DNA of 64,000 nucleotides from Macrostomum lignano (GCA_002269645.1 NIVC01000491.1:451243-515242); one strand, 5' to 3'. Positions 2,106 to 26,109 are shown, counted from the stretch's first letter. The notes: a model not told the origin generated them from the letters alone. A program made the numbers and translations.

Positions 2106-2306
2106 TGATGCATAATTGATTTTGTAGAACTGTATTCATGCGAGATTCTCACGAGAAGATTTTTATAGTGAGATTTTAAACGATTGCTATGGGATCATCA
2201 TGTGGGGTGCAAATTATGATAAAAATAGAAGATGCATTCAGTTACGCGCGCGGTCTAACAATAGTTTGATAGAAGAAGATAAACCGACTCCAATTAAAAA
2301 CTGTTT

Positions 2307-2666
2307 TTACTTTCTCTTTTTAAAAGACGAGTTTCCTGCAGCCTTCTTCTTAGCGGCCGGGCCCTTGCCAGCCTCGGCCAGGGACTTCCGTTTCTGGCCG
2401 CCGGAAGCGGACTGCTGGCCGGCCGGCGGCTGCAGTACGGAGAAGAACGAATCGATGCGACCTTGAACTGTTGTCTGCTTAGCTTTGAGCAGCCGCTTAG
2501 CCCCGCTGCGGACTCGTTCCTCGTTAAACCCGTTCTCTTCAACTAGGAATTTGATGAGGCCGGCTTCGTCCGGCTCGGACCACTTCAGCTCGACGGTGTC
2601 GCCAGGTGTAACGTCCGGCTTAGCGAACAGCCGCCTGGCCTCCTGGTATTGCCAGTTCTCTGGCAC
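2307..2666 (-). CDS. FEN1: FEN1 exon 4 (VPENW...[11 protein letters not shown] box...KKRK*)
   Basis: Acceptor CGCAG|GTGCCA; matches FEN1 C-terminus including the PCNA-binding QxxIxxFF motif and basic tail. Confidence 0.96.
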
Positions 2667-2759
2667 CTGCGGATGCGAATTGTGCGAGTAATTAGTCTGC
2701 TTTTTTAAAGTACTTGAACTTCAGAAGCTCGAACTCAGACTTCATATACCTAGGCTTCG

Positions 2760-3595
2760 AGTTCGAGTCTTAGGAGAGAGGTTCGGAGTTCGAGTCTCAG
2801 GAGAAAGGTTCGGAGTTCGAGTCTTAGGAGAGGTTCGGAGTTTGAGTCTCAGGAGAGATTCAGAGTTCGAGTCTCAGGAGAGATTCAGAGTTCGAGTCTC
2901 AAGAGAGGTTCGAAGTTCGAGTCTCAGGAGAGATTCAGAGTTCGAGTCTCAAGAGAGGTTCGAAGTTCGAGTCTCAGCGGACATGTGCAATTTGAGTCTT
3001 AGGAGAGGTTCGGAGTTCGAGTCTTAGGAGAGGTTTGGAGTTCGAGTCTTAGGAGAGGTTCGGAGTTCGAGTCTCAGGAGAGAGGTTCGGAGTTCGAGTC
3101 TCAGGACAGGTTCGGAGTTCGAGTCTCAGGAGAAAGGTTCGGAGTTCGAGTCTCAGGAGAGATTCAGAGCTCGAGTCTCAAGAGAGGTTCGAAGTTCGAG
3201 TCTCAGCGGACATTTGCAATTTGAGTCTTAGGAGAGGTTCGGAGTTCGAGTCTTAGGAGAGATTCGGAGTTCGAGTCTTAGGAGAGATTCGGAGTTCGAG
3301 TCTTAGGAGAGGTTCGGAGTTCGAGTCTTAGGAGAGATTCGGAGTTCGAGTCTTAGGAGAGGTTCGGAGTTCGAGTCTTAGGAGAGGTTCGGAGTTCGAG
3401 TCTTAGGAGAGGTTCGGAGTTCGAGTCTTAGGAGAGGTTCGGAGTTCGAGTCTCAGGAGAGATTCAGAGTTCGAGTCTCAAGAGAGGTTCGGAGTTCGAG
3501 TCTCTGGAGAAAGGTTCGGAGTTCGAGTCTCAGGAGAGATTCAGAGCTCGACTCTCAAGAGAGGTTCGGAGTTCGAGTCTCAGGGGAGGTTCGAA
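2760..3595. repeat. ~25-bp minisatellite (TTCGGAGTTCGAGTCTTAGGAGAGG)n in FEN1 intron 3
   Basis: Tandem unit read directly, with TTA/TCA variants. Confidence 0.95.
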
Positions 3596-4147
3596 CGCGA
3601 TTCCTATTTAAACTCTTAATGCGGAGATTTATAAAATTTGAACAAAATATGTTTTTAAACTTTAGGAGTCAACAGGTATTAATAAAAAGTTCACTAGAAT
3701 AATAACTGATTGACGGGTTTTCGAGTGTTCCATTCCCAGTCTATTCAATAGCAGAGCACTCAAGAGCAATTCAGCGCAAGCAAGTCGGGAAGTGAGTAGA
3801 ATTAAAAAACAGTCACGTTTCTTCGCTATCTTAAAGTGCAGCTCCAGCAAAAAAGCAATTACAAAAATGAGCTGTGCTGGGTAAATTAACTATGGAAATA
3901 ATAATATTAAAATATGCATGGCTAACAGAGAGAGAAGAAAGTGCTTATTAGATAAAGTTCACAGCGCTGACATCTGTGTGAGTAGGAATTCCATCATAAC
4001 TTAATTATCTGACAGATCCATCTGATCAGGACTGGGATAAATTCCTGTTCAAAAGTACAAAAGCAGCCAATGATCTTCTAAAAGCAAGAATCTTTTAATT
4101 TCGGAACAAAGAATGACATGAATTTAAACACAATTGAAGAATTTTAG

Positions 4148-5040
4148 GGCGATGGAACAAATACACACTTCGAGAATCTCTAAAAGCGATGGAACAAAGA
4201 CACACTTCGAGAATCTCTAAAAGCGATGGAACAAAGACACAGTTCGAGAATCTCTAAAAGCGATGGAACAAAGACACACTTCGAGAATCTCTAAAGCGAT
4301 GGAACAAAGACACTTCGGGAATCTCTAAAAGCGATGGAACAAAGACACACTTTGAGAATCTCTAAGGCGATGGAACAAAGACACAGTTCAAGATTAAGAA
4401 TCTCTAAAAGCGATGGAACAAAGACACACTTTGAGAATCTCTAAGGCGATCGAACAAAGGCACTTCGAGAATCTCTAAAAGCGATGGAACAAAGACACAG
4501 TTCAAGAATCTCTAAAAGCGATAGAACAAAGACACACTTTGAGAATCTCTAAGGCGATGGAACAAAGGCACTTCGAGAATCTCTAAAAGCGATGGAACAA
4601 AGACAGTTCAAGAATCTCTAAAAGCGATGGAACAAAGACACACTTTAAGAATCTCTAAGACGATGGAACAAAGACACACTTGAAGAATCTCTAAAGCCAT
4701 AGAAAAAAGACACACTTCGAGAATCTCTAAAAGCGATAGAACAAAGACACACTTTGAGAATCTCTAAGGCGATGGAACAAAGACACAGTTCAAGAATCTT
4801 TAAACGATGAAACAAAGACACTTTGAGAATCTCTAAAAGCGATGGAACAAAGACACACTTCAAGAATCTCTAAAAGCGATGGAACAAAGACACAGTTCAA
4901 GAGTCTCTAAAAAGCGATGGAACAAAGACACAGTTCAAGAGTCTCTAAAAAGCGATGGAACAAAGACACTGAGAATCTCTAAGGCGATGGAACAAAGACA
5001 CAGTTCGAGAATCTCTAAAACGATGGAACAAAGACACACT
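4148..5040. repeat. ~37-bp minisatellite (GCGATGGAACAAAGACACACTTCGAGAATCTCTAAAA)n in FEN1 intron 3
   Basis: Tandem unit read directly; ends ~15 nt from the exon 3 donor. Confidence 0.95.
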
Positions 5041-5055
5041 TAAAAGGCAACTCAC

Positions 5056-5514
5056 TTGATATTTGTCCTTGTCCAAATGCTTGAGCACATTGTCGATATC
5101 GCCATACTTTCGCAGAAACTCCAACGCCTTTTTCGGCCCGACGCCGCGAACCGAGTCGCAATAGTCGCAGCCAAGCAAGATGCACAGGTCAACAAACTGC
5201 TCCTGACTCATGCTCATCTCCTGCAACGCCTTGTCCAGTCGGAACTCTTGAATCGGCATCTTCTTGGCTTCGCTGAATGTTAGCCGACGCAACAGAACCG
5301 GTGCACCGAATGTCAGCGCGTCCATGTCTTCGGTGCCTACAGCGAAGACGCGACCGCTACGCACCAGCTCCGCGCACTGCGCCTCCGCCTCTGACGGCGC
5401 CTGAAGCCAGGGCACGCCCATCAGGGTGAGAAGTCGCTGACATTCTGCCGCGTGCTGTTTCGTCACCTTCACAAGGCGCTTGGACATGCGCTCCGCTTCC
5501 TCCGCATCTTCTAC
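5056..5514 (-). CDS. FEN1: FEN1 exon 3 (I-domain: [27 protein letters not shown]3TH GVGPKKA)
   Basis: Acceptor CCCCAG|GTA, donor CAA|GTGAGT; 153 codons with XPG/FEN1 catalytic motifs. Confidence 0.97.
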
Positions 5515-5559
5515 CTGGGGAGTGAGGGTGATTGGGAATAAAGGTTTCACTCAGGGGTG

Positions 5560-6042
5560 GGTAGCTAACATCTAGATCTATAGAGTATCTAACATCTAGA
5601 TCTATAGGGTAGCTAACATCTAGATCTATAGGGTAGCTAACATCCAGATCTATAGGGTAGCTAACATCTAGATCTATAGAGTAGCTAACATCTAGATCTA
5701 TAGGGTAGCTAACATCCAGATCTATAGGGTAGCTAACATCTAGATCTATAGGGTAGCTAACATCTAGATCTATAGGGTAGCTAACATATAGATCTATCGA
5801 GTAGCTAACATCTACATCTATAGGGTAGCTAACATCTAGATCTATAGGGTAGCTAACATATAGATCTATAGGGTAGCTAACATCTAGATCTATAGGGTAG
5901 CTAACATCTAGATCTATAGTGTTAACATCTAGATCTATAGGGTAGCTAACATCTAGATCTATAGGGTAGCTAACATATAGATCTATAGGGTAGCTAACAT
6001 CTAGATCTATAGGGTAGCTAACATCTAGATCTATAGTGTTAA
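5560..6042. repeat. 24-bp minisatellite (ACATCTAGATCTATAGGGTAGCTA)n, left half of an interrupted array
   Basis: Same array resumes in the same orientation at 25153. Confidence 0.95.
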
Positions 6043-6279
6043 CTAGCAATCTAGTGCGGCCCCCCTTCGGGGCGCCCAATAAGAAAGGAGCAAAAATAGT
6101 TCATGGAAAACAATAAAAAAACACATTTTCTTAAACACTAATTCCTTCTTCACATTTTAAAAATCACCTTATTCGTGTAAAATTGTCACGGACTAAGATG
6201 TTTGCAAAATTAAAAAATCACTTTTTCTCTAAAATTAACAAACAGTCAACAAAATATCGTTTCCCTAAATAGAAAATAT

Positions 6280-6610
6280 TCCCAAGACAGCAAGCAACCC
6301 CCTCCAAAAGTGAACAATCGCAGATAGCAAGCATCCTCTAATGCTCATAGCAAGAATCACCACAGATAGCAAGCATCTGCAGATTAGCAAGCACCCCTCC
6401 CAGATATTATAGAAGCATCCACCCAGATAGCAAGCATCCCCCAGATATTATAGAAGCAACCACCCAGATAGCAAGCATCCTGCAGATAGCAAGAATCCCT
6501 AAATAGCAAGCATCCCTGGATTGAAAGAATCCCATGCATGTAGCCAGCACCCCCTCTCCCAAATAGCAAGTATCCCCCCTCGAGAGCAAGCATCCACGAG
6601 ATAGCAAGTA
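6280..6610. repeat. Degenerate repeat with core CAGATAGCAAGCATCC
   Basis: Core motif recurs about 8-10 times at irregular spacing. Confidence 0.75.
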
Positions 6611-6719
6611 GCTAGTGCACATGTTACTTCCGCTAATGCAATAATCGCTTTCTCAGGTTGTGCAACAATCCACGTCTCAGCGAGCGCAATAATCTTTTTT
6701 TTAGACAGCGCAGTAATCA

Positions 6720-9700
6720 GCTTCTCAGCTAGTGCAATAATACTTGGTTTATTAATAGCAATAATCCTTGATTAATCAAGTGCAATAATCCTTGGTTTAT
6801 CAAGTGCAATAATCCTTGGTTTATCAAGTGCAGTAATCTTTGGCTTATAAAGTGCAATAATCCTTGGTTTATTAAGTGCAATAATCCTTTGTTTATCAAG
6901 TGCAATAATCCTTGGTTTATCAAGTGCAATAATCCTTTGTTTATCAAGTGCAATAATCCTTGGTTTATTAAGTGCAATAATCCTTGGTTTATCAAGTGCA
7001 ATAATCCTTGGTTTATCTAGCGCAGTAATCCTTGGCTTATCAAGTGCAATAATCCTTGGTTTATCAAGTGCAATATTTGTTTATCAAGTGCAATAATCCT
7101 TGGTTTATCAAGTGAAATAATCCTTGGTTTATCAAGTGCAATAATCATTGGCTTATCAACTGCAATAATCCTTGGTTTATCAAGTGCAATAATCCTTGGT
7201 TTATCTAGCGCAGTAATCCTTGGCTTATCAAGTGCAATAATCCTTGGTTTATCAAGTGCAATATTTGTTTATCAAGTGCAATAATCCTTGGTTTATCAAG
7301 TGAAATAATCCTTGGTTTATCAAGTGCAATAATCATTGGCTTATCAACTGCAATAATCCTTGGTTTATCAAGTGCAATAATCATTGGCTTATCAAGTGCA
7401 ATAATCCTTGGTTTATCAAGTGCAATAATCATTGGCTTATCAACTGCAATAATCCTTGGTTTATCAAGCGCAGTAATCCTTGGCCTATCAAGTGCAATAA
7501 TCCTTGGCTTATCGAGTGCAGTAATCCTTGGTTTGCCAAGAGCAATAATCCTTGGTTTATCGAGTGCAGTAATCCTTAGTTTTCCAAGTGCAGTAATCCT
7601 TGGTTTATTAAGAGCAATAATCCTTGGCTTATCGAGTGCAGTAATCCTTGGTTTGCCAAGAGCAATAATCCTTGGTTTATCGAGTGCAGTAATCCTTAGT
7701 TTTCCAAGTGCAGTAATCCTTGTTTATTAAGAGCAATAATCCTTGGTTTATCGAGTGCAGTAGTCCTTGGTTTATTAATAGCAATAATCCTTGAATAATC
7801 CAGTGCATTAATCTCTGGCTTATCAAGTGCAACATTCTTTACTATCAAGTGCAATAATCCATGGCTTATCAAGCTCTGTAATCCTTGGCTTATCAAGTGC
7901 AATAATCCTTGGTTTATCAAGTGCAATAATCCTTTGTTTATCAAGTGCAGTAATCCTTGGCCTATCAAGTGCAATAATCCATGGCTTATCAAGCGCTGTA
8001 ATCCTTGGCTTATCAAGTGCAATAATCCTTGGTTTATCAAGTGCAATAATCCTTGGTTTATCAAGTGCAATAATCATTTGTTTATCAAGTGCAATAATCC
8101 TTGGTTTATCAAGCGCAGTAATCTTTGGCTTATCAAGTGCAATAATCCTTGGTTTATCAAGTGCAATAATCCTTGGTTTATCAAGTGCAATATTTGTTTA
8201 TCAAGTGCAATAATCCTTGGTTTATCAAGTGAAATAATCCTTGGTTTATCAAGTGCAATAATCCTTGGTTTATCAAGTGCAGTAATCCTTAGTTTTCCAA
8301 GTGCAGTAATCCTTGGTTTGCCAAGAGCAATAATCCTTGGTTTATCGAGTGCAGTAATCCTTAGTTTTCCAAGTGCAGTAATCCTTGGTTTATTAAGAGC
8401 AATAATCCTTGGCTTATCAAGTGCAGTAGTCCTTGGTTTATTAATAGCAATAATCCTTGAATAATCCAGTGCAACATTCTTTACTATCAAGTGCAATAAT
8501 CCATGGCTTATCAAGCGCTGTAATCCTTGGCTTATCAAGTGCAATAATCCTTGGTTTATCAAGTGCAATAATCCTTGGTTTATCAAGTGCAATAATCCTT
8601 GGTTTAACAAGTGCAATAATCCTTGGTTTATCAAGTGCAATAATCCTTGGTTTATCAAGTGCAATAATCCTTTGTTTATCAAGTGCAATAATCCTTGGTT
8701 TATCAAGTGCAATAATCTTTGGTTTATCAAGTGCAATAATCCTTGGTTTATCAAGTGCAGTAATCCTTGGCCTATCAAGTGCAATAATCCTTGGTTTATC
8801 AAGTGCAGTAATCTTTGGCCTATCAAGTGCAATAATCCTTGGTTTATCAAGTGCAATAGTCCTTGGTTTATCAAGTGCAGTAATCCTTGGTTTTCCAAGT
8901 GCAATAATCCTTGGCTTCTTGAGTGCAGTAATCCTTGGTTTTCCAAGTGCAATAATCCTTGGCTTCTTGAGTGCAGTAATCCTTGGTTTATCAAGTGCAG
9001 TAATCTTTGGCTTATAAAGTGCAATAATCCTTGGTTTATCAAGTGCAATAATCATTGGCTTATCAACTGCAATAATCCTTGGTTTATCAAGCGCAGTAAT
9101 CCTTGGCCTATCAAGTGCAATAATCCTTGGCTTATCGAGTGCAGTAATCCTTGGTTTGCCAAGAGCAATAATCCTTGGTTTATCGAGTGCAGTAATCCTT
9201 AGTTTTCCAAGTGCAGTAATCCTTGGTTTATTAAGAGCAATAATCCTTGGCTTATCGAGTGCAGTAATCCTTGGTTTGCCAAGAGCAATAATCCTTGGTT
9301 TATCGAGTGCAGTAATCCTTAGTTTTCCAAGTGCAGTAATCCTTGGTTTATTAAGAGCAATAATCCTTAGTTTATCGAGTGCAGTAGTCCTTGGTTTATT
9401 AATAGCAATAATCCTTGAATAATCCAGTGCATTAATCTCTGGCTTATCAAGTGCAACATTCTTTACTATCAAGTGCAATAATCCATGGCTTATCAAGCTC
9501 TGTAATCCTTGGCTTATCAAGTGCAATAATCCTTGGTTTATCAAGTGCAATAATCCTTTGTTTATCAAGTGCAGTAATCCTTGGCCTATCAAGTGCAATA
9601 ATCCATGGCTTATCAAGCGCTGTAATCCTTGGCTTATCAAGTGCAATAATCCTTGGTTTATCAAGTGCAATAATCCTTGGTTTATCAAGTGCAATAATCA

Positions 9701-10390
9701 TTTGTTTATCAAGTGCAATAATCCTTGGTTTATCAAGCGCAGTAATCTTTGGCTTATCAAGTGCAATAATCCTTGGTTTATCAAGTGCAATAATCCTTGG
9801 TTTATCAAGTGCAATAATCCTTGGTTTATCAAGTGCAATATTTGTTTATCAAGTGCAATAATCCTTGGTTTATCAAGTGAAATAATCCTTGGTTTATCAA
9901 GTGCAATAATCCTTGGTTTATCAAGTGCAGTAATCCTTAGTTTTCCAAGTGCAGTAATCCTTGGTTTGCCAAGAGCAATAATCCTTGGTTTATCGAGTGC
10001 AGTAATCCTTAGTTTTCCAAGTGCAGTAATCCTTGGTTTATTAAGAGCAATAATCCTTAGCTTATCAAGTGCAGTAGTCCTTGGTTTATTAATAGCAATA
10101 ATCCTTGAATAATCCAGTGCAACATTCTTTACTATCAAGTGCAATAACCCATGGCTTATCAAGCGCTGTAATCCTTGGCTTATCAAGTGCAATAATCCTT
10201 GGTTTATCAAGTGCAATAATCCTTGGTTTTCCAAGTGCAGTAATCCTTGGTTTATTAATAGCAATAATCCTTGGCTTCTTGAGTGCAGTAATCCTTGGTT
10301 TGCCAAGAGCAATAGTCCTTGGTTTATCGAGTGCAGTAGTCCTTGGTTTATTAATAGCAATAATCCTTGGCTTATCGAGTGCAGTAATCT
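6720..10390. repeat. 24-bp satellite (TCAAGTGCAATAATCCTTGGTTTA)n, ~3.7 kb, with higher-order duplication
   Basis: Unit read directly; the unique marker CAGTGCATTAATCTCTGGC occurs at 7801 and 9425 (offset 1624). Confidence 0.97.
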
Positions 10391-10460
10391 AAGTGTTTTT
10401 ATTTAGTCCTTTAATAAAACCTTCTAATAAAAATTTTTACACTACTACTTTTAAACTACT

Positions 10461-10520
10461 TAGATTCGAACCTAGGTCGCTGCATTAGCAGTCTGGTCTG
10501 TTCAGCTCTAGGCTAGCTCT
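10461..10520 (-). mobile_element. Possible degenerate tRNA-derived SINE head
   Basis: Minus strand GAGAGCTAGCCTAGAG...CTGCTAA...GGTTCGAATC gives A-box-like and B-box motifs; no full cloverleaf. Confidence 0.35.
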
Positions 10521-11229
10521 CATCGAAGTTATCAGTGATGTTGTACCACTTATATAATTCAACACTCACACCAAGTCAGGTAGAGTAAAAAGTCTCACGA
10601 AGCAGTTATGACATAATCAATTTCTTAGGCAAGTCAGTACCAGTGTCTATGAAAGTTTACAATATGGTTACGTAATATAAATTCAGTACTGCGCTATGCT
10701 TTCACACTCAAAGCTGTGACGCAATTCAATTGAGTGTCAAATTCAGCCAGTACACAGACGATAAATAAAGTGTATTGTGATGCAATCTATTTCAGAATCA
10801 GAATTCAACCAGTCAGTTTTTCTGCTAGCATTCTTACAATGCATTTCAAGTCGAAAGAGCTGCTTGACCTTTGCAAAAAAGCATGTTTTTCGAATATTTA
10901 ATCCCTTTAACATTGAGCAATTTCTTAGCCACGATGCATGTACCGTCACGGAATAATTTCTGATCGAACAGTGCAGGTTCGAAGAAAATCGGTTCAGCCG
11001 TTTTTGCTAAAATCGATCACACACACACACACGCACACACAAACAGACCATTTTTAGTATATTACGAGTGGAACTCCTCCTTCGGAGGAGAAAGGGGAAG
11101 AACTCCCATCACCGGAATTCTATTCCCTGAAATATCCATCAACTGAAATTCCATGTCTTTAACCCTATCTTCCAAATCGTCTCCAAATTCTTTACAAAAT
11201 CTTTCAAAGACCATAGCTCAAAGACTCTT

Positions 11230-12345
11230 ACGTCTCTCATATCTACTCTCTCCTCTCTTCGCTATTATCGTGACTCGCTTCTCTCTCCTCTCTCTCATCT
11301 CATCTCTACCCCTACTCTCTTATTTATCTCTACTCCCTTATTTATCTCTTCTCCCTCGTCTTTCGTCTGTACCCTATCCTGTCTACTCTCCTATCTTCTA
11401 TCTTATCTCTCCCCTTTTCTCTCCTCTCTCATATCTAATCTCTAATCACTTATCTATCGTCTCCGCTCTACTTTCTCTCTTCTTTTTTCTCTCTTCTCTC
11501 TGCTCTCATTTCTCGTATCTCTTATACGCTCTCACCCTCTCCTTTCTTATCTCCCATCTTTCTTCCCTCCTTTCTACTGCATCACCTGTCTCCTCTCTTC
11601 TCTTTTCTCTCCTCTCCATTCTCTCTTCTCTACTCTCATCTCCCCTCATCTCTTCTCTAATCTCTAATCTCTTCTCTCTCTTATTTTCTCACTCATCTCT
11701 TTTCTCATTGCATCTCTCATCTCTCCTCTCTCTCTCTCCTCTCATCTGTACTATCTTTTTTATCTCTTCTCCCAGGTCTTTCAAATTTACTCTCTCCTGT
11801 CTCCTCTCTCCCCTCGTCTTTCCTCTCTCATATCTCTTCTCTACTCACTTATATATTCTCTCTCCTCTGCTCCCCTTTTACACTTTGCTATATGCTCTCA
11901 CTCTCACCCTCCCCTTTCTTATCTGCTGTTTTTACACTCCTTTCTACCACCTGTCTCCTCTCGTTTCTCTCCTCTCTGCACTCTCATCTTTACCCTCTTC
12001 TTTCTCCTCACTACTTTCTTCTCTTAAATCTCTGATCTCTGATCTTTCATCTCTCTCCTCTCACCTCTCACCTCTCTCCTCTCTTTCCTCTCTTCTATTG
12101 CCTCTGTACGCTCTTGTCCCTCCTTTCTTCTCCATCCTGTCTCCTCTCTGCAATCTCATATCTCCTCTCTCATATCCTCTCCCTTCATCTCCTCTCTCCT
12201 CTTCTCTTCTCTCTCCTTCGTTCCCGCCTTACTTTCCTCTTCTCTCCCATCTGTCATGTCTAATCTCTCCACTCATTTCTACTCTGTTTTCTATCATCTC
12301 ATCTCTCTTCTCTTTTCATTCTTCTCTTTACTCTCTTCTCTGACT
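11230..12345 (+). repeat. CT-rich polypyrimidine tract of B unit 1; homologous tracts at ~14010-14885, 16360-17360, 18845-19770, 21680-22690
   Basis: About 1 kb almost G-free on the + strand; source of the Leu/Ser ORFs. Confidence 0.95.
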
Positions 12346-12880
12346 GATTGAAGATGCCAAATCCATCAAGATCCTCTCCGCGAAGCAGAAATCCTGTCCG
12401 TGCAACTGAAAACCATCGAAATCCTCTCCGTGAAACTGGACTCCTTCGAAATCCTCTCCTTGAAACTTAAATCCATCAAAATCGTCTCCATAAAACAGAA
12501 ATCAATCATAAATTATCTCCGCGAAACAGAAATCCTCTCCGTGAAGCTGAACATCATCGAAATCCTCTCCGTGAAACTGAACACCTTCGAAATCCTCTCC
12601 GTGAAACTGAACACCTTCGAAATCCTCTCCTTGAAACTTAAATCTATCAAAATCGTCTCCATAAAGCAGAAATCAATCATAAATTTAACTCCGCGAAACA
12701 GAAATCCTCTCCGTGAAGCTGAACATCATCAAAATCCTCTCCGTGAAACTGAGCACCATCGAAATCCTCTCCACGAAACAGAAATCCTCTTTGTCAAAAT
12801 TAAAACATTGAAATCGTCTCCGCTAAACTGGACTCAATCAATTTTTTCCGTCAAACAACTCAACTCTCCGGATTCATTGG

Positions 12881-15800
12881 TTAGGGTTAGGGTTAGGGTT
12901 AGAACTACGCACAGCTTCGTGTTAAAAGGCACTGATAAACTATTGAACTAATTGAATCAATTCATTGCGCAACCGATTTCACAGTCAGTCAGTATCAGTC
13001 TCAGTTAAAGTTAACAAAAACATTGCGCAATCTAAATCAACCCTCCAATACAAAGCAACTGACCCCCTTCCTATACACAGCGCCAGTTGGAAGTCGAAAC
13101 CCCCAACTTTATCTCTCACCTCTCGCCAAAATGAGTACAATCTTTGCAGAAAGTTTAAAGTATGGAAATAGTTTTTGCAATGCAGAGCTTTTAGTTTTCA
13201 TATTTGAAGCAAACAATTTATATCCCTGAAATCAGCTTTGCAAGTTCTTTCCAGCAATATAAATTTTTTCTCTCAAAGTTAAAAACTCGAGCAACAGTTT
13301 GCGTTTGAAACTTTCTGATTTAAAGCATTGAAATATCGATTGTACGTTCACTGCCTGCTAAAGAGGCCCGCAAGTTTATGCATTGAATTTCAACGTTCAA
13401 CAAAATCACAGGGCTGCCTATTGAAAATTAGAACACAAATCTTTGCGCAATTGTCTATACAGTCAGCCAGTGAGCCAGGGTCCGATTGTACACAGGCAGC
13501 CATTTAGAACGCCCCATCCCCCCACTGGAGAGAAAATACACTGCAGAGATAGGGAAAAGTTGTGGCGCAATCACTTGAAATTCATGCAAATTTTCAGCTC
13601 CAAGCAGAAAGAGGGGACAATTAAGATTATCAAAGGTCAAGACCGCCGTTTTCTGCTTTTTTGAGGATTTAAGAAATTAAAATTTCAGAATTAAAATAGC
13701 CTATAGCCGACCTCGGATAATTTCCAATCTTCCCATATAAGTTTCAACGCTGAGTTGCCACTATTCAAGGAGGAGTTGTCGAAATGACAGACAGACACAC
13801 AGACAGACAGACAAACAACGCGTCAACTTTAGTATATAGAGTGGAACTCCTCCTTCGGAGGAGAAAGGGGAAGAACTCCCATCACCGGAATTCTGAAGGG
13901 GAAGAACTCCCATCAGCTGAAATTCCATGACTTGAATCCCATCTTCCAAATCATCTCCAAATCCTCTACAATGCATTTCAATTACCGGATATCTTGTTTT
14001 CCCTATTTGCAAAAACTCACTGGCATTGTCCAGACTCGGACTCTCATGTCTCTGCTCTCATTTCTCATATCTCATATCTTTCATATCACTCTCTCCTTTC
14101 TTATCTTCCATCTTTCTGCCCTCCTTACTACCGTCTCTTGTCACCTCTCTTTTCTCTCCTCTCCATTCTTCTCTCCTTTCCTTTCTCCTCTCATCTTCTC
14201 CCCTCTCTTCTCAAATCTCTCTCTCTCTTTTCTCACTTATCTCTTTTCTATTTGCATCTCTCATCTCTCATCTCTCTCCTCTCATCTGTACTATCTTATT
14301 TATCTCTTCTCCCAGGTCTTTCAAATTTACTCTCTCCTGTCTCCTCTCTCCCCTCGTCTCTCCTCTCTCATATCTCTTCTCTACTCACTTATCTATTCTC
14401 TCTACTCTGCTCCCCTTTTACACTTTCCTATATGCTCTCACTCTCACCATCTCCTTTCTTATCTCCTGTTTTTTACACCCCTTTCTACCACCTGTCTTCT
14501 CTTGTTTCTCTCCTCTCTGCACTCTCATCTTTACCCTCTTCTTTCTCCTCACTACTTTCTTCTCTTAAATCTCTGATCTCTGATCTTTCATCTCTCTCCT
14601 CTCAACTCTCACCTCTCTCCTCTCTTTCCTCTCTTCTATTGCCTCTGTGCGCTCTTATCCCTCTTTTCTTCTCTGTCCTGTCTCCTCTCTGCTATTTCAT
14701 ATCTCCTCTCTCATATCCTCTCCCTTCATCTCCTCTCTCCTCTTCTCTTCTCTCTCCTTCGTTCCCGCCTTACTCCCCTCTTCTCTCCCATCTGTCATGT
14801 CTAATCTCTCCACTCATTTCTACTCTGCTTTCTATCATCTCATCTCTCTTCTCTTTTCATTCTTCTCTTTACTCTCTTCTCTGACTGATTGAAGATGCCA
14901 AATCCATCAAGATCCTCTCCGCGAAGCAGAAATCCTGTCCGTGCAACTGAAAACCATCGAAATCCTCTCCGTGAAACTGGACTCCTTCGAAGTCCTCTCC
15001 TTGAAACTTAAATTTATCAAAATCGTCTCCAAAAAACAGAAATCAATCATAAATTATCTCCGCGAAACAGAAATCCTCTCCGTGAAGCTGAACATCATCG
15101 AAATCCTCTCCGTGAAGCTGAACACCATCGAAATCCTCTCCACGAAACAGAAATTTTCTCCGTCAAAATTAAAACATTGAAATCGTCTCCGCTAAACTTG
15201 ACTTAATCGAATTTTTTCCGTCAAACAACTCAACTCTCCGGATTCATTGGTTAGGGTTAGGGTTAGGGTTAGAACTGCGCACAGCTTCGTGTTAAAAAGC
15301 ACTGATAAAAATATTGAACTAATTGTATCAATTCATTGCGCAACCGATTTCACAGTCAGTCAGTATCAGTCTCAGTTAAAGTTAACAAAAACATTGCGCA
15401 ATCTAAATCAACCCTTCAATACACAGCAGCAGTGAGAAGTTGAACCCTCCCCCAACTTTATCTATTACGTCTCGCAAAACTGAGTACGATTTTTGCAGAA
15501 AGTTAAATGTATGGAAATAGTTTTTTAAATGCTGTGCTTTTTCTTTTCATATTTAAAGCAAACAACTTATATCCCCGAACTCAGCGTTGCAAGATCTTTC
15601 CAGCAATATCAGTTTCTCCTATCAAAGTTTAAAACTCGAGGAACAGTTAGCGTTTAAAACTGTCTGATTTATAGCATTGAAGTATCGAGTGTACGTTGAC
15701 TGCCTGCTTGCAAGTTGATGCATTGAATTTCAATGTCCAACAAATACACAGGGCTGCCCATTGAAAGGCAGGAAAACTTATCAGTAGCCATATCATTGCG

Positions 15801-18800
15801 CAATTATCTATACAGTCAGCCAGTGAGCCAGGGTCCAAGTGTACACACGCAGCCACTGAGAACGCTCCCACCCCCCACTGGAAAGAAAATACACTACAGA
15901 GATAGGGAAAAGTTGTGGCGCAATCACTAAAAATTCATGCATTTTTTCAGCTCCAAGCAGAAAGAGGGGACAATTAAGATTATCAAAGGTCAAGATTCAA
16001 GTTTTCTGCTTTTTTGAGGATCTAAGAAATTAAAATTTCAGAATTAAAATAGCCTATAGCCGACCTCGGATTATTTCCAATCTTCCCATATAAGTTTCAA
16101 CGCTGAGTTGCCACTATTCAAGGAGGAGTTGTCGAAATGACAGACAGACACACAGACAGACAGACAAACAACGCGTCAACTTTAGTATATATAGAAGTGG
16201 AACTCCTCCTTCGGAGGAGAAAGGGGAAGAACTCCCATCACCGGAATTCCATTCCCTGAATTATCCATCAACTGAAATTCCATGTCTTGAACCCCATCTT
16301 CCAAATCGTCTCCAAATTCTTTACAAACCTTTCAAAGACCATAGCTCAAAGACTCTTACGTCTCTCATATCTACTCTCTCCTCTCTTCGCTATTATCGTG
16401 ACTCGCTTCTCTCTCCTCTCTCTCATCTCATCTCTACCCCTACTCTCTTATTTATCTCTACTCCCTTATTTATCTCTTCTCCCTCGTCTTTCTTCTGTAC
16501 CCTCTCCTGTCTACTCTCCTATCTTCTATCTTATCTCTCCCCTTTTCTCTCCTCTCTCATATCTCATCTCTAATCACTTATCTATCGTCTCCGCTCTACT
16601 TTCTCTCTTCCCTTTTCTCTCTTCTCTCTGCTCTCATTTCTCGTATCTCTTATACGCTCTCAACCTCTCCTTTCTTATCTCCCATTTTTCTTCCCTCCTT
16701 TCTACTGCATCACCTGTCTCCTCTCCTCTCCATTCTCTCTTCTCTCCTCTCTCTCCTCTCATCTGTACTATCTTATTTATCTCTTCTCCCAGGTCTTTCA
16801 AATTTACTCTCTCCTGTCTCCTCTCTCCCTCGTCTTTCCTCTCTCATATCTCTTCTCTACTCACTTATCTATTCTCTCTCCTCTGCTCCCCTTTTACACT
16901 TTCGTATATGCTCTCACTCTCACCCTCTCCTTTCTTATCTCCTGTTTTTTACACTCCTTTCTACCACCTGTCTCCTCTCGTTTCTCTCCTCTCTGCACTC
17001 TCATCTTTACCCTCTTCTTTCTCCTCACTACTTTCTTCTCTTAAATCTCTGATCTCTGATCTTTCATCTCTCTCCTCTCACCTCTCACCTCTCTCCTCTC
17101 TTTCCTCTCTTCTATTGCCTCTGTACACTCTTATCCCTCCTTTCTTCTCTCTCCTGTCTCCTCTCTGCTATCTCATATCTCCTCTCTCATATCCTCTCCC
17201 TTCATCTCCTCTCTTCTCTTCTCTTCTCTCTCCTTCGTTCCCGCCTTATACTCCCCTCTTCTCTCCCATCTGTCATGTCTAATCTCTCCACTCATTTCTA
17301 CTCTGTTTTCTATCATTTCATCTCTCTTCTCTTTTCATTCTTCTCTTTACTCTCTTCTCTGACTGATTGAAGATGCCAAATCTATCAAGATCTTCTCCGC
17401 GAAGCAGAAATCCTGTCCGTGCAACTGAAAACCATCGAAATCCTCTCCGTGAAACTGGACTGCTTCGAAATCCTCTCCTTGAAACTTAAATCCATCAAAA
17501 TCGTCTCCATAAAGCAGAAATCAATCATTAATTATCTCCGCGAAACAGAAATCCTCTCCGTGAGGCTGAACATCATCAAAATCCTCTCCGTGAAACTGAA
17601 CACCATCGAAATCCTCTCCACGAAACAGAAATTCTCTCCGTCAAAATTAAAACATTGAAATCGTCTCCGCTAAACTGGACTCAATCGAATTTTTTCCGTC
17701 AAACAACTCAACTCTCCGGATTCATTGGTTAGGGTTAGGGTTAGGGTTAGGGTTAGGGTTAGAACTACGCACAGCTTCGTGTTAAAAGGCACTGATAAAA
17801 ATATTGAACTAATTGAATCAATTCATTGCGCAACCGATTTCACAGTCAGTCAGTATTAGTCTCAGTTAAAGTTAAAAAAAAGATTGCGCAATCTAAATCA
17901 ACCCTTCAATACACAGCAGCTGTGAGAAGTTAAACCCTCCCCCAACTTTATCTCTTACGTCTCGCAAAACTGAGTACAATTTATGCAGAAAGTTAAAAGT
18001 ATGGAAATAGTTTTTTAAATGCGGTGCTTTTTCTTTTCATATTTAAAGCAAACAACTTATATCCCTAAACTCAGCGTTGCAAGATCTTTCCAGCAATATA
18101 AGTCTCTCCTCTCAAAGTTTAAAACTCGAGGAACAGTTAGGGTTTGAAACTGTCTGATTTATAGCATTGAAGTATCGAGTGTACGTTCACTGCCTGCTTG
18201 CAAGTTGATGCATTGAATTTCAATGTCCAACAAATACACAGGGCTGCCCATTGAAAGGCAGGAAAACTTATCAGTAGCCATATCATTGCGCAATTATCTA
18301 TACAGTCAGCCAGTGAGCCAGGGTCCAAATGTACACACGCAGCCACTGAGAACGCTCCCACCCCCCACTGGAAAGAAAATACACTACAGAGATAGGGAAA
18401 AGTTGTGGCGCAATCACTAAAAATTCATGCATTTTTTCAGCTCCGAGCAGAAAGAGGAGACAAATAAGATTATCAAAGGTCAAGATTTGAGTTTTCTGCT
18501 TTTTTGAGGATCTTAGAAATTAAAATTTCAGAATTAAAATAGCCTATAGCCGACCTCGGATAATTTCCAATCTTCCCATATAAGTTTCAACGCTGAGTTG
18601 GCACTATTCAAGGAGGAGTTGTCGAAATGACAGACACACAGACAGACACACAGACAAACAACGCGTCAACTTTAGTATATACGAGTGGAACTCCTCCTTC
18701 GGAGGAGAAAGGGGAAGAACTCTCATCACCGGAATTCCATTCCCTGAATTATCCATCAACTGAAATTCCATGTCTTGAACCCCATCTTCCAAATCGTCTC

Positions 18801-21800
18801 CAAATTCTTTACAAACCTTTCAAAGACCATAGCTCAAAGACTCTTACGTCTCTCAAATCTACTCTCTCCTCTCTTCGCTATTTTCGTGACTCGCTTCTCT
18901 CTCCTCTCTCTCATCTCATCTCTACCCCTACTCTCTTATTTATCTCTACTCCCTTATTTATCTCTTCTCCCTCGTCTTTCGTCTGTACCCTCTCCTGTCT
19001 ACTCTCCTATCTTCTATCTTATCTCTCCCCTTTTCTCTCCTCTCTCATATCTCATCTCTACTTACTTATCTATTGTCTCCGCTCTACTTTCTCTCTTCTC
19101 TCTGCTCTCATTTCTCGTATCTCTTATACGCTCTCACCCTCTCCTTTGTTATCTACCATCTTTCTTCCCTTTCTACTGCATCACCTGTCTCCTCTCCTCT
19201 CTTTTCTCTCCTCTCATCTCCCCTCATCTCTTCTCTAATCTCGAATCTCTCCTCTCTCATATCTCTTCTCTACTCACTTATCTATTCTCTCTCCTCTGCT
19301 CCCCTTTTACACTTTCGTATATGCTCTCACTCTCACCCTCCCCTTTCTTATCTCCTGTTTTTTACACTCCTTTCTACCACCTGTCTCCTCTCGTTTCTCT
19401 CCTCTCTGCACTCTCATCTTTACCCTCTTCTTTCTCCTCACTACTTTCTTCTCTTAAATCTCTGATCTCTGATCTTTCATCTCTCTCCTCTCACCTCTCA
19501 CCTCTCTCCTCTCTTTCCTCTCTCCTATTGCCTCTGTACGCTCTTATCCCTCCTTTCTTCTCTCTCCTGTCTCCTCTCTGCTATCTCATGTCTCCTCTCT
19601 CATATCCTCTTCCTTCATCTCCTCTCTCCTCTTCTCTTCTCTCTCCTTCGTTCCCGCCTTACTCCCCTCTTCTCTCCCATCTGTCATGTCTAATCTCTCC
19701 ACTCATTTCTACTCTGTTTTCTACCATCTCATATCTCTTCTCTTTTCATTCTTCTCTTTACTCTCTTCTCTGACTGATTTAAGATGCCAAATCCATCAAA
19801 ATCCTCTCCGCGAAGCAGAAATCCTGTCCGTGCAACTGAAAACCATCGAAATCCTCTCCGTGAAACTGAACTCCTTCGAAATCCTCTCCTTGAAACTTAA
19901 ATCCATCAAAATGGTCTCCATAAAACATAAATCAATCATAAATTATATCCGCGAAACAGAAATCCTCTCCGTGAAGCTGAACATCATCGAAATCCTCTCC
20001 GTGAAACTGAACACCATCGAAATCCTTTCCACGAAACTGAACACCATCGAAATCCTCTCCACGAAACAGAAATCCTCTCCGTCAAAATTAAAACATTGAA
20101 ATCGTCTCCGCTAAACTGGACTCAATCGAATTTTTTGCCGTCAAACAACTCAACTCTCCGGATTCATTGGTTAGGGTTAGGGTTAGGGTTAGAACTACGC
20201 ACAGCTTCGTGTTAAAAGGCACTGATAAACTATTGAACTAATTGAATCAATTCATTGTGCAACCGATTTCACAGTCAGTCAGTATCAGTCGCAGTTAAAG
20301 TTAACAAAAACGTTGTGCAATCTAAATCAACACTCCAATACACAGCAGCAGTGAGAAGTTGAACCCTCCCCCAACTTTATCTATTACGTCTCGCAAAACT
20401 GAGTACGATTTTTGCAGAAAGTTAAAAGTATGGAAATAGTTTTTTAAATGCTGTGCTTTTTCTTTTCATATTTAAAGCAAACAACTTACATCCCCGAACT
20501 TAGCGTTGCAAGATCTTTCCAGCAATATAAGTTTCTCCTCTCAAAGTTTAAAACTCGAGGAACAGTTAGCGTTTGAAACTGTCTGATTTATAGCATTGAA
20601 GTATCGAGTGTACGTTGACTGCCTGCTTGCAAGTTGATGCATTGAATTTCAATGTCCAACAAATACACAGGGCTGCCCATTGAAAGGCAGGAAAACTTAT
20701 CAGTAGCCATATCATTGCGCAATTATCTATACAGTCAGCCAGTGAGCCAGGGTCCAAGTGTACACACGCAGCCATTTAGAACGCCCCATCCCCCCACTGG
20801 AGAGAAAATACACTACAGAGATAGGGAAAAGTTGTGGCGCAATCACTTGAAATTCATGCAAATTTTCAGCTCCAAGCAGAAAGAGGGGACAATTAAGATT
20901 ATCAAAGGTCAAGATTCAAGTTTTCTGCTTTTTTGAGGATCTTAGAAATTAAAATTTCAGAATTAAAATAGCCTATAGCCGACCTCGGATAATTTCCAAT
21001 CTTCCCATATAAGTTTCAACGCTGAGTTGGCACTATTCAAGGAGGAGTTGTCGAAATGACAGACACACAGACATACAGACAAACAACGCGTGAACTTTAG
21101 TATATGTAGATAGAAGAGATAGCCATATCATTGCGCAATTATCTATACAGTCAGCCAGTAAGCCAGGGTCCAAGTGTACACACGCAGCCACTGAGAACGC
21201 TCCCACCCCCCACTGGAAAGAAAATACACTACAGAGATAGGGAAAAGTTGTGGCGCAATCACTAAAAATTCGTGCATTTTTTCAGCTCCAAGCAGAAAGA
21301 GGGGACAAATAAGATTATCAAAGGTCAAAACCGCCGTTTTCTGCTTTTTTAGGGATCTTAAAATGTAAAAATGAAAGATTAAAATAGCCTAAAGCCATCC
21401 TCGGAAAATTTGCAGTTTTCCAATATAAGTTTCAACGCTGAGTTGCAAGTATTCTAGGAGGAGTTATGCAACAGACAAACAAACACACAAACATCGCACC
21501 AACTTTAGTATATACGAGAGTGGAACTCCTCCTTCGGAGGAGAAAGGGGAAGAACTCCCATCACCGGAATTCCATTCCCTGAAATATCCATCAACTGAAA
21601 TTCCATGTCTTGAACCCTATCTTCCAAATCGTCTCCAAATTCTTTACAAAACCTTTCAAAGACCATAGCTCAAAGACTCTCACGTCTCTCATATCTACTC
21701 TCTCCACTCTGTGCTATTATCGTGACTCTCTTCTCTCTCCTCTCTCTCATCTCATCTCTACCCGTACTCCCTTATTTATGTTTTCTCCCTCGTCTTTCGT

Positions 21801-24108
21801 CTGTACCCTCTCCTGTCTCTTGTCTCCTCTCTTCTCTCATATCTCTCCTCTTCACTTCTGTCTCCTGTCTTCTCTCTTCTCTCTTATCTCTCCCTCTTCT
21901 CTCCTCTTTTATATGTCATCCCTATTCACTTATCTATCGTCTCTCTTAACCCTCTCTCTCTTCTCTTTTCTTTCCTCTCTGCTCTCATTTCTCATATCTC
22001 ATATACGCTCTCACACTCCACTTACTTGTCTCCAATCTTTCTTTCCTCCTTTCCACTTTTCCCTGTCTCTTCTCTTCTCTCTTTTCTATCCTCTCCATTC
22101 TCTCTTTTCTCCTCCCCTTGCTCCTTTTATCTTCTCCCCTCTCTTCTCTAATCTCTTCTCTCTTCTCTCTTATGTTCTCACTCATCTCTTATCATCGCAT
22201 CTCTCATCTCTCCTCTCCTCACTACTTTCCTCTCTTAACTCTCTTATCTATTTCATCTCTCTCCTCTCTCCTCTTTCTCTTCTCCTCTCGCTTCTTCTCT
22301 CGCTTCTCTCTCCTATCTCTCCTCTCATCTCTACTACCGTATTTATATCTTCTAACTGGTCCTTCGTCTCTACTCTCTCCTTTCTCCTTTCTCCCCTCTT
22401 TTCTCCTTTCTTGTCTCTCCTGTCTCCTCTCCTCTCTCATCCCTCATCCTCTCATCTCACTCTTTCTTTCTCCTCTACTCTCCCCTCTCTTCTATTTTCT
22501 CTGTACGCTCTTATCCCTAATCTATTTTCTCTCCTCTCTCCTCTTTTCTTCTCTCTCCCTCTTCGTTCCCGCCTAAATCCCCTCTTCTCTCCAATCTGTC
22601 ATGTCTAATATCTCCACTTATTTCTACTCTGTTTTCTATCATCTCATCTCTCTTCTGCTTTCATTCTTCTCTTTACTCTTTTCTCTGACTGATTGAAGAT
22701 GCCAAATCCATCAAGATCCTCTCCGCGAAGCAGAAATCCTGTCCGTGCAACTGAAAACCATCGAAATCCTCTCCGTGAAACTGGACTCCTTCGAAATCCT
22801 TTCCGTGAAACTGAAAACCATCGAAATTCTCTCTTTTAAACTGGACTCAATCGAAATTTTCTCCGTCAAAAAAATAAATATCAGGATTCATTGGTTAGGG
22901 TTATTGTTAGGGTTAGGGTTACGGTTAAAGCTACACACAGCTGCGTGTTCAAATAAAAAATTGAACCAATTGAATCAATTGATTGCGCAACCGATTTCTC
23001 AGTCAGTCAGTATCAGTCTCAGTTAAAGTTAACAAAAACATTGCGCAATCTAAATCAACCCTCCAATACACAGCAGCAGTGAGAAGTTGAACTCTCCCCC
23101 CAACTTTATCTATTACGTCTCGCAAAACTGAGTACAATTTTTGCAGAAAGTTAAAAGTATGGAAATAGTTTTTTTCAATGCTGTGCTTTTTCTTTTCATA
23201 TTTAAAGCAAACAATTTATATCCCTGAAATCAGCTTTGCAAGTTCTTTCTAGCAATATTAATTTTTTCTTTCGAAGTTAAAAACTCGAGCAACAGTTTGC
23301 GTTTGAAACTTTCTGATTTAATGCATTGAAATATCAATTGTACGTTCACTGCCTGCTAAAGAGGCCCGCAAGTTTATGCATTGAATTTCAAGGTTCAACA
23401 AAACACAGGGCTGCCTATTGAAAATTAGAACACAAATCTTTGCGCAATTGTCTATAAAGTCAGCCGGTGAGCCAGGGTCCGATTGTACACATGCAGCCAT
23501 TTAGAACGCCCCATCCCCCCACTGGAGAGAAAATACACTGCAGAGATAGGGAAAAGTTGTGGCGCAATCACTTGAAATTCATGCAAATTTTCAGCTCCAA
23601 GCAGAAAGAGGGGACAATTAAGATTATCAAAGGTCAAGACCGCCGTTTTCTGCTTTTTTGAGGATCTTAGAAATTAAAATTTCAGAATTAAAATAGCCTA
23701 TAGCCGACCTCGGATAATTTCCAATCTTCCCATATAAGTTTCAACGCTGAGTTGGCACTATTCAAGGAGGAGTTGTCGAAATGACAGACAGACAGACAGA
23801 CAAACAACACGTCAACTTTAGTATATACGAGGCCAACTCCTCCTTCGGAGAAGAAAGGGGAAGAACTCCAATCAGCGGAATTCCATTCCCTGAACTCCAT
23901 AAGCGGAATCCCATTTTCCAACACCTCTCCGCGCAACAGAAATCGTCTCCGTGAAACTGAACACTATCGAAATCCTCTCCGTGAAACTGAACACCATCGA
24001 AATATTCTCCGCGAAATAGAAATCCTCTCCGTGAAACTGGACTAAATCGAAATTTCTACGTCAAATAGCCCAGCTCTCAGAATTCATTGGTTAGGGTTAG
24101 GGTTAGGG
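12881..24108 (+). repeat. Interstitial telomere-like TTAGGG runs, one per B unit (12881 x3, 15251 x3, 17729 x5, 20171 x3, 22895 degenerate, 24091 x3)
   Basis: Read directly; always preceded by ATTCATTGG. Confidence 0.9.
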
Positions 24109-25152
24109 TTGACAGCTGCGTGTTGAAAGGCGCCGTAAAAACATTGAACCAATTAAATTGCGCAACTTATTTCTCAGGCAGTCAGTATCAGCCTCAGTTA
24201 AAGTTAACAAAAAGATTGCGCAATCTAAATCAACCCTCAAATACACAGCAACCGACCCCCCTTCCAATACGCAGTGCAGCTAGAAATTGAACCCCCCCCA
24301 CCAACTATTGGGGGGTCGGTCGAACTCCCATTGAACTCCAAAATGAGCACAATCTTTGCAGAAAGCTAAAAGTATGAAAATCTTTTCTTGAATGCTGTGA
24401 ATTTAATTTTCATATTTAAAGCAAAAAACTTATATCCCCGAACTCATTGCAGCAAGATCTTTCCAGCAATATAAGTCTCTCCTCTCTAAGTTCAAAACTC
24501 GAGCAACAGTTAGTGTTTGAAACTTTCTGATTTTAAGCATTGAAATATCGAGTGTACGTTCACTGCCTGCTAAAGATGCTCGCAAGTTTATGCATTAAAA
24601 TGCACTGAATTTCACTGTGCAAAAAATACACAGGGCTTCCTGTTAAAAAACAGAACACAAATAGTTGCGCAATTGTCTATAAAGTCAGTCAGTGAGCCAG
24701 GGTTCAAGTGTACACACGCAGCCACTGAGAACGCGACCATCCCCCCACTTGAGAGAAAATACACTGCCAAGATAGAAAAATTTTATGGCGCAATCACTAA
24801 AATTGATGCAAATTTTCAGCTCCAAGCAGAAAGAGGGGACAATTAAGATTATCAAAGGTCAAGACCGCCATTTTCTGCTTTTTTAGGGATCTTAAAAATT
24901 GAAAATGAAAGATTAAAATAGCCTAAAGCCATCCTCGGAAAATTTGCAGTTTTCCCATATAAGTTTCAACGCTGACTTGCAAGTATTCTAGGAGGAGTTA
25001 TCCAACAAACACACACACACACAGACAAACAACGCACCAACTTTAGTATTAAGATATTCTAGGAGGAGTTATCCAACAAACACACACACACACAGACAAA
25101 CAACGCACCAACTTTAGTATTAAGATAGAAGATAGATAGATAGAGAAGAAGA

Positions 25153-25640
25153 CATCTAGATCTATAGGGTAGCTAACATCTAGATCTATAGGGTAGCTAA
25201 CATCTAGATCTATAGGGTAGCTAACATCTAGATTTATAATGTTAACATCTAGATCTATAGGGTATCTAACATCTAGATCTATAAGGTATCTAACATCTGG
25301 GTCTATAGGGTATCTAACATCTAGATCTATAGTGTATCTTACATATAGATCTATAGGGTATCTAACATCTAGATCTATAGGGTAGCTAACATCTAGATCT
25401 AAAGTTTAACATCTAGATCTATAAGGTATCTGATATCTAGATCTATCTAACATCTGGATCTATAGGGTATCTAACATCTAGATCTATAGGGTATCTGATA
25501 TCTAGATCTATAGGGTATCTAACATCTAGATCTATAGTGTATCTAACATCTAGATCTACAGGTTATCTAACGTCAAGATCTACAGTTTATCTAAGGTGTA
25601 AGATCTAAAGGTTGTCTAACATCTAGATCTTAGGATATCT
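25153..25640. repeat. 24-bp minisatellite, right half of the interrupted array, degenerating toward exon 2
   Basis: Same unit and orientation as 5560-6042. Confidence 0.93.
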
Positions 25641-25843
25641 AACATCTAAATTCAGTGAATCTGAGACAGATCTAAATGCAGGATATTTGAGGCAAATCTA
25701 TATTTATTCTGTAGGATTTCTACCTTTAGACTAATCAAAAAGATCACTTGACATTTTTGGGATTATAATCCCAAAATCAAAGTGCTTACTAAAATAGAAT
25801 ACAACAATCAACTCTTAAGAATACCCATCCCCTTTTTACAAAC

Positions 25844-26109
25844 CTCTTGCGCCCGTTCAAGCGCTTTCTCAGCCTCGTCTCGCTTCTCCTGACGCTTAGC
25901 CAACTCGCCAGATTTCATCTGAGGCGGCGCGCCATCGAATATATAAACAGGTTTAAGGCCATTGTCAATCATACGCATAGTTCGATAGAACATGCCCAAA
26001 AGGTGAGATGTAGTTTCACCATCGGCGTTAGTCAAATTGCCGCCGTCCTGGCGAACAGCGGTTAGAAACTGATAGAGGCACATGCTGGCATCAATCGCTA
26101 CCTTTCGGC
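25844..26109 (-). CDS. FEN1: FEN1 exon 2 ([10 protein letters not shown]...[11 protein letters not shown]...FDG...ERAQE)
   Basis: XPG N-domain motifs; acceptor CCAAG|GC, donor GAG|GTTTGT. Confidence 0.95.

Follow-up and report, generated by a model that had tools for sequence, protein, structure and literature searches.

The question raised by this locus is what has enlarged one intron of an essential replication gene, FEN1, in Macrostomum lignano. The window, which is the whole stretch of 64,000 nucleotides of contig NIVC01000491.1 that was analysed, carries FEN1 on its minus strand in four coding exons, located at 30500-30581 (exon 1, with the ATG at 30581), 25844-26109 (exon 2), 5056-5514 (exon 3) and 2307-2666 (exon 4, including the stop codon). 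The spliced model of 388 amino acids was identical at 387 of 388 positions to the full-length NCBI FEN1 of M. lignano (P0121), with exon 2 among the matching parts, and a UniRef M. lignano FEN1 fragment showed 100% identity to the same four-exon model. The second coding intron spans 5515-25843 on the minus strand and measures 20,329 bp; the mean intron length in the M. lignano genome is 1.1-1.4 kb (PMC5730564). Its GT (25843-25842) and AG (5516-5515) were read directly from the sequence, and the splice sites and the reading frame around it are intact. We found that most of this intron is an insert of 19,110 bp, which interrupts a minisatellite, has no counterpart in the two other FEN1 copies of the genome and is probably a rolling-circle transposon of the Helitron type.

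The limits of the insert were set by the repeats on its two sides. Tandem Repeats Finder detected one shared 24-bp unit (GGGTAGCTAACATCTAGATCTATA) in 20 copies with 93% matches at 5559-6036 and in 21 copies with 82% matches at 25152-25648, and the arrays, when written out unit by unit, were found to have the same orientation. The left array (5559-6042, 20 units) adjoins the 3' end of the insert when read in gene sense, and its last unit is a 21-bp variant closed by AA at 6041-6042. The right array (25153-25648, ~21 units) is more degenerate, lies on the 5' side and opens at 25153 with CATCTAGATCTATAGGGTAGCT. Deletion of 6043-25152 (19,110 bp) fuses ...GTGTTAA to CATCTAGATC... and gives a perfect consensus unit in phase. 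The 40-mer spanning this reconstructed join has exactly one further occurrence in the window, at 5906-5945, where the left array contains a paralogous empty site. The faultless unit formed by the joined flanks and the second occurrence of the junction 40-mer show that the insert has no target-site duplication (TSD), and target bases were neither duplicated nor lost. The boundary slides by one nucleotide in either direction (T|G, G|T or T|T) because the last base of the flank equals the last base of the insert, and likewise at the other end. These results bear out the preliminary description of this DNA, which had placed one 24-bp minisatellite on both sides of an insert, claimed that its removal restores a unit variant also present near ~5918-5930, and proposed an insertion without TSD into G|T, or into T|T by a shift of 1 nt, rather than into A|T.

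The absence of the insert was next seen at the level of whole gene copies. The FEN1 loci were reached from the UniRef cluster of the matching fragment through the NCBI proteins of assembly GCA_002269645.1, which gave three loci, NIVC01000734.1 (L001), NIVC01000690.1 (L002) and NIVC01000491.1 (L003), the last being identical to window positions 15487 to 1. Both L001 and L002 have full models of 416 amino acids, and both align to the window on either side of the insert and to no part of the insert itself. Their second introns contain the minisatellite uninterrupted, with ~14 units in 568 bp in L001 and ~41 units in 1,278 bp in L002, and the window copy minus the insert has an intron of 1,219 bp with ~41 units when joined. 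The 24-bp array ends 38 nt upstream of exon 3 in all three copies alike. The 21-bp variant unit that was the target is absent from L001 and L002, and the exact join is therefore checkable only against the paralogous unit in the window's own array. The non-coding identity of the window to L001 or L002 is 87-92%, and L001 and L002 are more closely related to each other (~95%) than either is to the window. The FEN1 coding sequence of the window differs from those of the other two at 19-23 nt, all but one of them synonymous, with a single amino-acid change. Differences of this kind indicate that all three copies are under purifying selection and that the window FEN1 is a real gene copy.

The termini of the insert carry the signatures of a canonical Helitron. 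On the FEN1 sense strand, which is the minus strand, the insert begins at 25152 with TCTTCTTCTCTATC... (also written TCTTCTTC or TCTTCTTCTCTATCTATC). Its first two bases are TC (25152-25151), the host G at 25153 precedes them, and the position of this end is fixed by the in-phase reconstruction of the flanks. The TC opens a 5' leader of 25 nt (TCTTCTTCTCTATCTATCTATCTTC, 25128-25152). The 3' end, which reads ...TTGGGCGCCCCGAAGGGGGGCCGCACTAGATTGCTAG, closes with CTAG at 6046-6043, a form of the CTRR motif, and is followed by the host T at 6042. A spacer of 11 nt (GCACTAGATTG, 6047-6057) separates the CTAG from a GC-rich palindrome of 19 nt (GGCGCCCC-GAA-GGGGGGCC, 6076-6058), which has an 8-bp stem with one G.G mismatch, a GAA loop and a folding energy of -9.7 kcal/mol as DNA, and which is a putative rolling-circle terminator. 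A TC start and an end made of hairpin, 11 nt and CTAG on the FEN1 sense strand had been proposed earlier, and both were located at these positions. Known canonical Helitrons have 5'-TC, 3'-CTRR and a palindrome of 16-20 nt ~11 bp from the end, and lack a TSD (PMC4067079); the distance from palindrome to 3' end is typically given as ~10-12 nt, and in the insert it is 11 nt to the CTAG and 15 nt to the last base. In keeping with such elements, neither terminal inverted repeats (TIRs) nor long terminal repeats (LTRs) were found, the terminal matches being chance-level 7-16-mers and the blastn comparison of the terminal 700 nt giving E values of at least 2. Only 6 comparable GC-rich hairpins with an 8-bp stem occur in the 64 kb, so the chance of finding one 8-18 nt from a given junction is ~1e-3, and TC...CTRR has a probability of 1/1024 per placement and orientation, with 3 placements and 2 orientations possible. 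By our own rough estimate, which allows for these placements and orientations, the two features at the right distance would occur together by chance with a probability of ~1e-5.

The interior of the insert is composed of repeats and lacks coding capacity. Read 5' to 3' in element orientation, all on the minus strand, it consists of the leader (25152-25128), an array of macro-repeat units (25127-11020), a unique non-coding spacer of 630 bp (11019-10390), a 24-bp satellite (10389-6731), short degenerate repeats (6730-6347) and an AT-rich tail (6346-6043). The tail measures 304 bp with the palindrome included, and its unique AT-rich subterminal part lies at 6077-6346. The satellite (AGTGCAATAATCCTTGGTTTATCA, 153.5 copies, 83% matches) is unrelated to the flanking minisatellite, and the degenerate repeats are of 17-41 bp and of the ATAGCAAGCATCCCCCAG type. 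The macro-repeat array comprises ~6.5 head-to-tail units of 1.2-2.8 kb, each made up of a GACA/TG microsatellite, a core of ~0.95 kb, (TTAGGG)2-5, a 30-bp minisatellite, ~1.3 kb of CT-rich low-complexity DNA and a palindrome. The TTAGGG tracts, one per unit, are located at 12881, 15251, 17729, 20171, 22907 and 24091, and these six are the only ones in the window. The unit boundary is marked by a perfect 17-nt palindrome, CTCCTCC-GAA-GGAGGAG, which shares its GAA loop with the terminal hairpin and is found at 11076, 13849, 16205, 18693, 21528 and 23839, and CTAA follows ~15 nt later on the element strand. The identity between unit cores ranges from 83.5 to 96.7%; the three central units are the most alike (95.5-96.7%) and the most divergent one adjoins the 5' end, where a perfect tandem duplication of 71 bp (24984-25127) also adjoins the leader. 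Every open reading frame (ORF) of the insert is a translated repeat and none is a real one, and no poly(A) tail is present on it. The Rfam search of the insert gave 0 matches and ARAGORN found no tRNAs in it, indicating that the macro-repeat is not a known RNA gene array such as spliced-leader (SL) RNA or 5S.

Since the insert is free of TSD, TIRs and coding sequence, and has a 5'-TC, a CTAG-3' and a 19-nt subterminal palindrome, we consider it probable that it is a rolling-circle transposon of 19,110 bp, non-autonomous and of the canonical (Helitron1-like) type, inserted in sense orientation and carrying satellite arrays. Its anatomy thus matches a kind of element that is already described and is not a new one. 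The anatomy and the empty paralogues were observed here, and the mechanism is taken over from the work on Helraiser, an element with TC/CTAG ends and a 19-bp palindrome 11 nt from its end, in which the hairpin is the terminator of rolling-circle replication and insertion occurs without TSD (PMC4778049). By analogy, a RepHel transposase encoded elsewhere would nick a donor copy at the 5'-TC, and the donor strand would be unwound and replicated as far as the terminator formed by the 3' palindrome and CTAG. The strand would then be circularised and inserted into a nicked target without duplication of target bases. Such an insertion would have enlarged the intron from ~1.2 kb to 20.3 kb, leaving the short uninterrupted intron in the other two FEN1 copies, and the cargo delivered would be non-coding, namely the 24-bp satellite (x153) and the macro-repeat array with its interstitial telomeric repeats. 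A multi-unit array, at least a part of the present one, was probably already inside the element on arrival, as judged from the sequence comparisons, because the oldest split between macro-units (83.5-85% identity) is deeper than the divergence of the FEN1 copies (87-92%). The three central units and the 71-bp duplication may represent later growth in place. The proposal that one non-autonomous composite expanded the intron from ~1.2 to ~20 kb is supported and is the best reading available. The window intron minus the insert (1,219 bp) and the short introns of L001 and L002 agree with it, while a single event of 19 kb goes beyond what was observed, as the three macro-units at the centre (96% alike) may have multiplied locally.

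Several observations weigh against the Helitron identity or the direction of the event. With canonical ends the insert sits at G|T and not at the usual A|T, although the 3' T is present. Among new insertions of Helraiser, 46 of 1,751 were outside AT (PMC4778049), and A|T is therefore a strong preference and not an absolute rule. The commonest alternative targets of Helraiser are TT, AC and AA, and G|T is not among them. One mismatch interrupts the palindrome, whose distance from the last base of the insert is 15 nt, compared with 11 nt in Helraiser. The last 14 nt of the insert (CTAGCAATCTAG.. on the plus strand) weakly resemble the CTAG-rich minisatellite unit, and BLAST extended the array alignments to 6054, into the 3' end of the insert. 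A single deletion by recombination between the flanking arrays, in the ancestor of L001 and L002, would look the same as an insertion into the window copy. The Helitron label is drawn from a single copy of the element: a search of the 64-kb window that allowed up to 3 mismatches recovered either terminus only in the element itself, no part of the insert had a match in L001, L002 or the extension of L003 (~67 kb of additional M. lignano DNA), and the 3' terminus gave 0 matches in two JGI metagenome scans. No RepHel gene was present among the long ORFs of the window, to which this search was confined.

Other searches for related copies gave the following results. A generic scan for hairpins with perfect stems followed by CTRR-T returned none, with 1.35 expected in shuffles, and the 417-aa ORF encoded in the 24-bp satellite, used as a protein query for other copies, had no match. 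Exact look-ups of ORFs from the window and of the UniRef fragment among known proteins likewise gave nothing. The literature searched contained no description of Helitrons in Macrostomum. A second candidate for a Helitron 3' end, consisting of a GC-rich hairpin, 12 nt and CTAGACTAG, was noticed in FEN1 intron 1 (30183-30224, minus strand) and rejected as a recent insertion; it is old or coincidental because a degraded form stands at the same place in L001 and L002. Among other classes of element, a TIR transposon, an LTR element and a non-LTR retroelement were rejected on the lack of TSD, TIRs and LTRs, and piggyBac was rejected because TTAA occurs on one side only. A long interspersed element (LINE)-type insertion on the plus strand, which ends in (GATA)3GAGAAGAAGA, was rejected on size, content and the lack of TSD.

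The history of the locus could differ from the arrival of a complete 19-kb element. A much smaller Helitron-like element may have landed, possibly before the FEN1 copies diverged, with its satellite arrays growing in place afterwards, and unequal recombination between the two flanking minisatellite arrays may have removed it from the other copies. Such a course of events agrees with the Helitron reading, and only the history would change. A clean deletion could take place between the flanking arrays, since they are direct repeats, one loss would suffice since L001 and L002 share a recent ancestor (95%), and both the central macro-units, 95.5-96.7% alike, and the perfect 71-bp duplication show in-place expansion. 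We nevertheless hold such a history to be somewhat unlikely, considering that the units at both junctions are still perfect consensus, that the junction 40-mer is intact and that identity across the oldest macro-unit split (83.5-85%) is below that between the copies (87-92%), which means that purely in-place growth of the array would need an insertion before the gene duplication. It is unlikely that no transposon was involved and that a satellite-rich chromosomal fragment of ~19 kb, or a linearised extrachromosomal circle of tandem repeats, was captured at a double-strand break in the fragile minisatellite by end joining or by a replication template switch, its Helitron-like ends being coincidental. 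Chance would bring together the TC, the CTRR and so rare a GC-rich palindrome, correctly spaced and oriented, with a probability of ~1e-5, the target site has neither lost nor gained a single base, and 19 kb is large for captured filler DNA. What such a capture would explain is the microhomology of only 1 nt per junction, which is typical of end joining, the composition of the insert, which is almost wholly tandem repeats of the kind that form circles, the target other than A|T, and the failure to find a second copy of the termini in the window, in ~67 kb of M. lignano DNA and in metagenomes.

The ambiguity of 1 nt also allows a placement between T and T, with boundaries shifted to CTTC...CTAGT, as in Helentron or Helitron2-type (HINE-like) elements. 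Central tandem arrays and a short 3' palindrome are features of HINEs, and this group is the one best known for central tandem repeats (PMC4067079). The subterminal inverted repeats of 12-15 bp of that group were, however, not found: when the first 80 nt of the insert were compared with its last 300 nt, the best inverted match was a 7-mer, and blastn gave E values of at least 2. Runs of T are absent from the ends of the insert, and the element would no longer start with TC. The Helentron/Helitron2 option raised in the preliminary description is therefore unsupported, and we regard it as very unlikely. It is still more improbable that the 19 kb were misplaced into the intron during long-read assembly through repeats. 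The M. lignano genome is indeed hard to assemble, with more than half of it repetitive and 15% in simple or tandem repeats (PMC5730564), and the perfect 71-bp duplication adjoins one of the junctions. A mis-join would be expected inside shared repeats, and would not create unique junctions at both ends, in phase to the base and with transposon-like termini. In addition, two independent annotations (A0A1I8FWP4 and PAA82171.1) begin in exon 3, which fits a real large gap.

Among the known systems, the putative Helitron in FEN1 resembles Helibat/Helraiser and their non-autonomous derivatives (PMC4778049) in its TC/CTAG ends, 19-nt palindrome, lack of TSD and TIRs, T in the 3' flank and lack of coding capacity. 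It is unlike them in its 5' flanking G, in the mismatch and the distance of 15 nt from palindrome to last base, in its size of 19 kb, in a cargo made entirely of satellite and macro-repeats and in being known from a single copy. Internal satellite arrays are frequent in Helitrons and Helentrons (PMC12628747, PMC8268682). With the satellite-carrying elements of bivalves and Drosophila (DINE-1/HINE and Cg170-type; PMC4067079, PMC8268682, PMC12628747), the insert shares short ends around central tandem arrays and more than one type of array. Those elements, however, are mostly of Helentron type, with subterminal inverted repeats of 12-15 bp and TT targets, neither of which was found in the insert, and their arrays are usually far shorter than the 3.7 kb and 14 kb present here.

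A further likeness concerns the tandem arrays of truncated Helitrons that arise by aberrant rolling-circle replication, reported by Xiong, Dooner and Du in 2016 and taken here as they are summarised in PMC12628747. As in that summary, units follow one another head to tail in a long array towards the 5' end of the insert, and there is one hairpin end at 3'. In the arrays as summarised there each unit opens with a Helitron 5' end, whereas the 25-nt leader of the insert is unique. The idea that each macro-unit starts with a Helitron 5' end was accordingly rejected, as the leader is unique, the unit boundaries differ and the units have their own GAA-loop palindrome. These macro-unit palindromes may be decayed or weak rolling-circle terminators. 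One speculative and quite unlikely extension is that the element belongs to an undescribed flatworm Helitron lineage which tolerates non-A 5' flanks, and that its array arose when rolling-circle replication ran past weak internal terminators (CTCCTCC-GAA-GGAGGAG with CTAA ~15 nt on). If that were true, Helitron replication would make kilobase-scale satellites with interstitial telomeric repeats and disperse them into genes.

For FEN1 itself, the locus offers a natural experiment, in which, among three nearly identical copies of this essential replication gene, one would have gained a 16-fold larger intron after genome duplication and the other two would have kept the ancestral state. The 19-23 copy-specific, synonymous differences make the effect of the giant intron on splicing testable. 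The existing annotations of the window copy lack exons 1 and 2, with UniProt A0A1I8FWP4 beginning at the first codon of exon 3 (5514) and NCBI PAA82171.1 (263 amino acids) at its first Met codon (5487). These shortened models agree with a genuine giant intron, perhaps a poorly spliced one, and could equally stem from ambiguity of read mapping between the FEN1 copies. If splicing were impaired, a mobile element may be starting the loss or the divergence of a duplicated core gene. If the Helitron identity is true, the case would point to rolling-circle elements as carriers of satellites and interstitial telomeric repeats in a genome with 15% tandem repeats. What makes the case valuable is the comparison of three copies and the unusual size of the satellite and telomeric-repeat cargo.

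Minisatellites fill other introns of FEN1 too. Intron 3 of the window copy contains arrays of 37-bp and 25-bp units, at 4149-5041 and 2759-3593, and the size of the 37-bp array differs strongly between the copies, being ~0.9 kb in the window, ~3.2 kb in L001 (15449-18651) and ~1.1 kb in L002 (16172-17230). Upstream of FEN1, the window at 32260-39217 is 99.2% identical to L001 at 1-6972, and from ~32,250 onwards the identity to L001 is 87-91%. L002 is 92-94% identical in the stretch matching 32260-39217. The sharp mosaic boundary near ~32,250 indicates either recombination or conversion between duplicated chromosomes or a mosaic of the assembly.

The rest of the window contains further repeats and genes. 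Two inverted arms of 489 bp, 99.6% identical, lie at 44638-46111 around an ORF of 234 amino acids with a GIY-YIG nuclease domain (44920-45624, minus strand), and the whole probably represents a young GIY-YIG element, Penelope-like or of another type. A fragment of a reverse transcriptase (RVT_1, E 2.5e-13) is located at 35577-36224. The protein search with this fragment returned UniRef entries and short ENA/JGI environmental contigs only, and no NCBI M. lignano protein; such contigs, at 60-78% identity, are among its closest relatives and indicate that public metagenomes contain Macrostomum-like DNA. A minisatellite with a 21-bp unit (ATTTTGGCGCCGCAGGCACTC) is found at 31070-31306 and at 37958-38176 beside a sequence of ~160 bp in inverted copies (31286-31442 and 32120-31959), and the two together are probably a dispersed repeat family carrying its own minisatellite. 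On the plus strand, an axonemal dynein heavy-chain gene with DHC_N2 and AAA_6 domains occupies 50761-64000, and its introns contain long minisatellites, for example a 16-bp unit repeated 90 times at 58099-59527 and a 21-bp unit repeated 24 times at 57163-57670.

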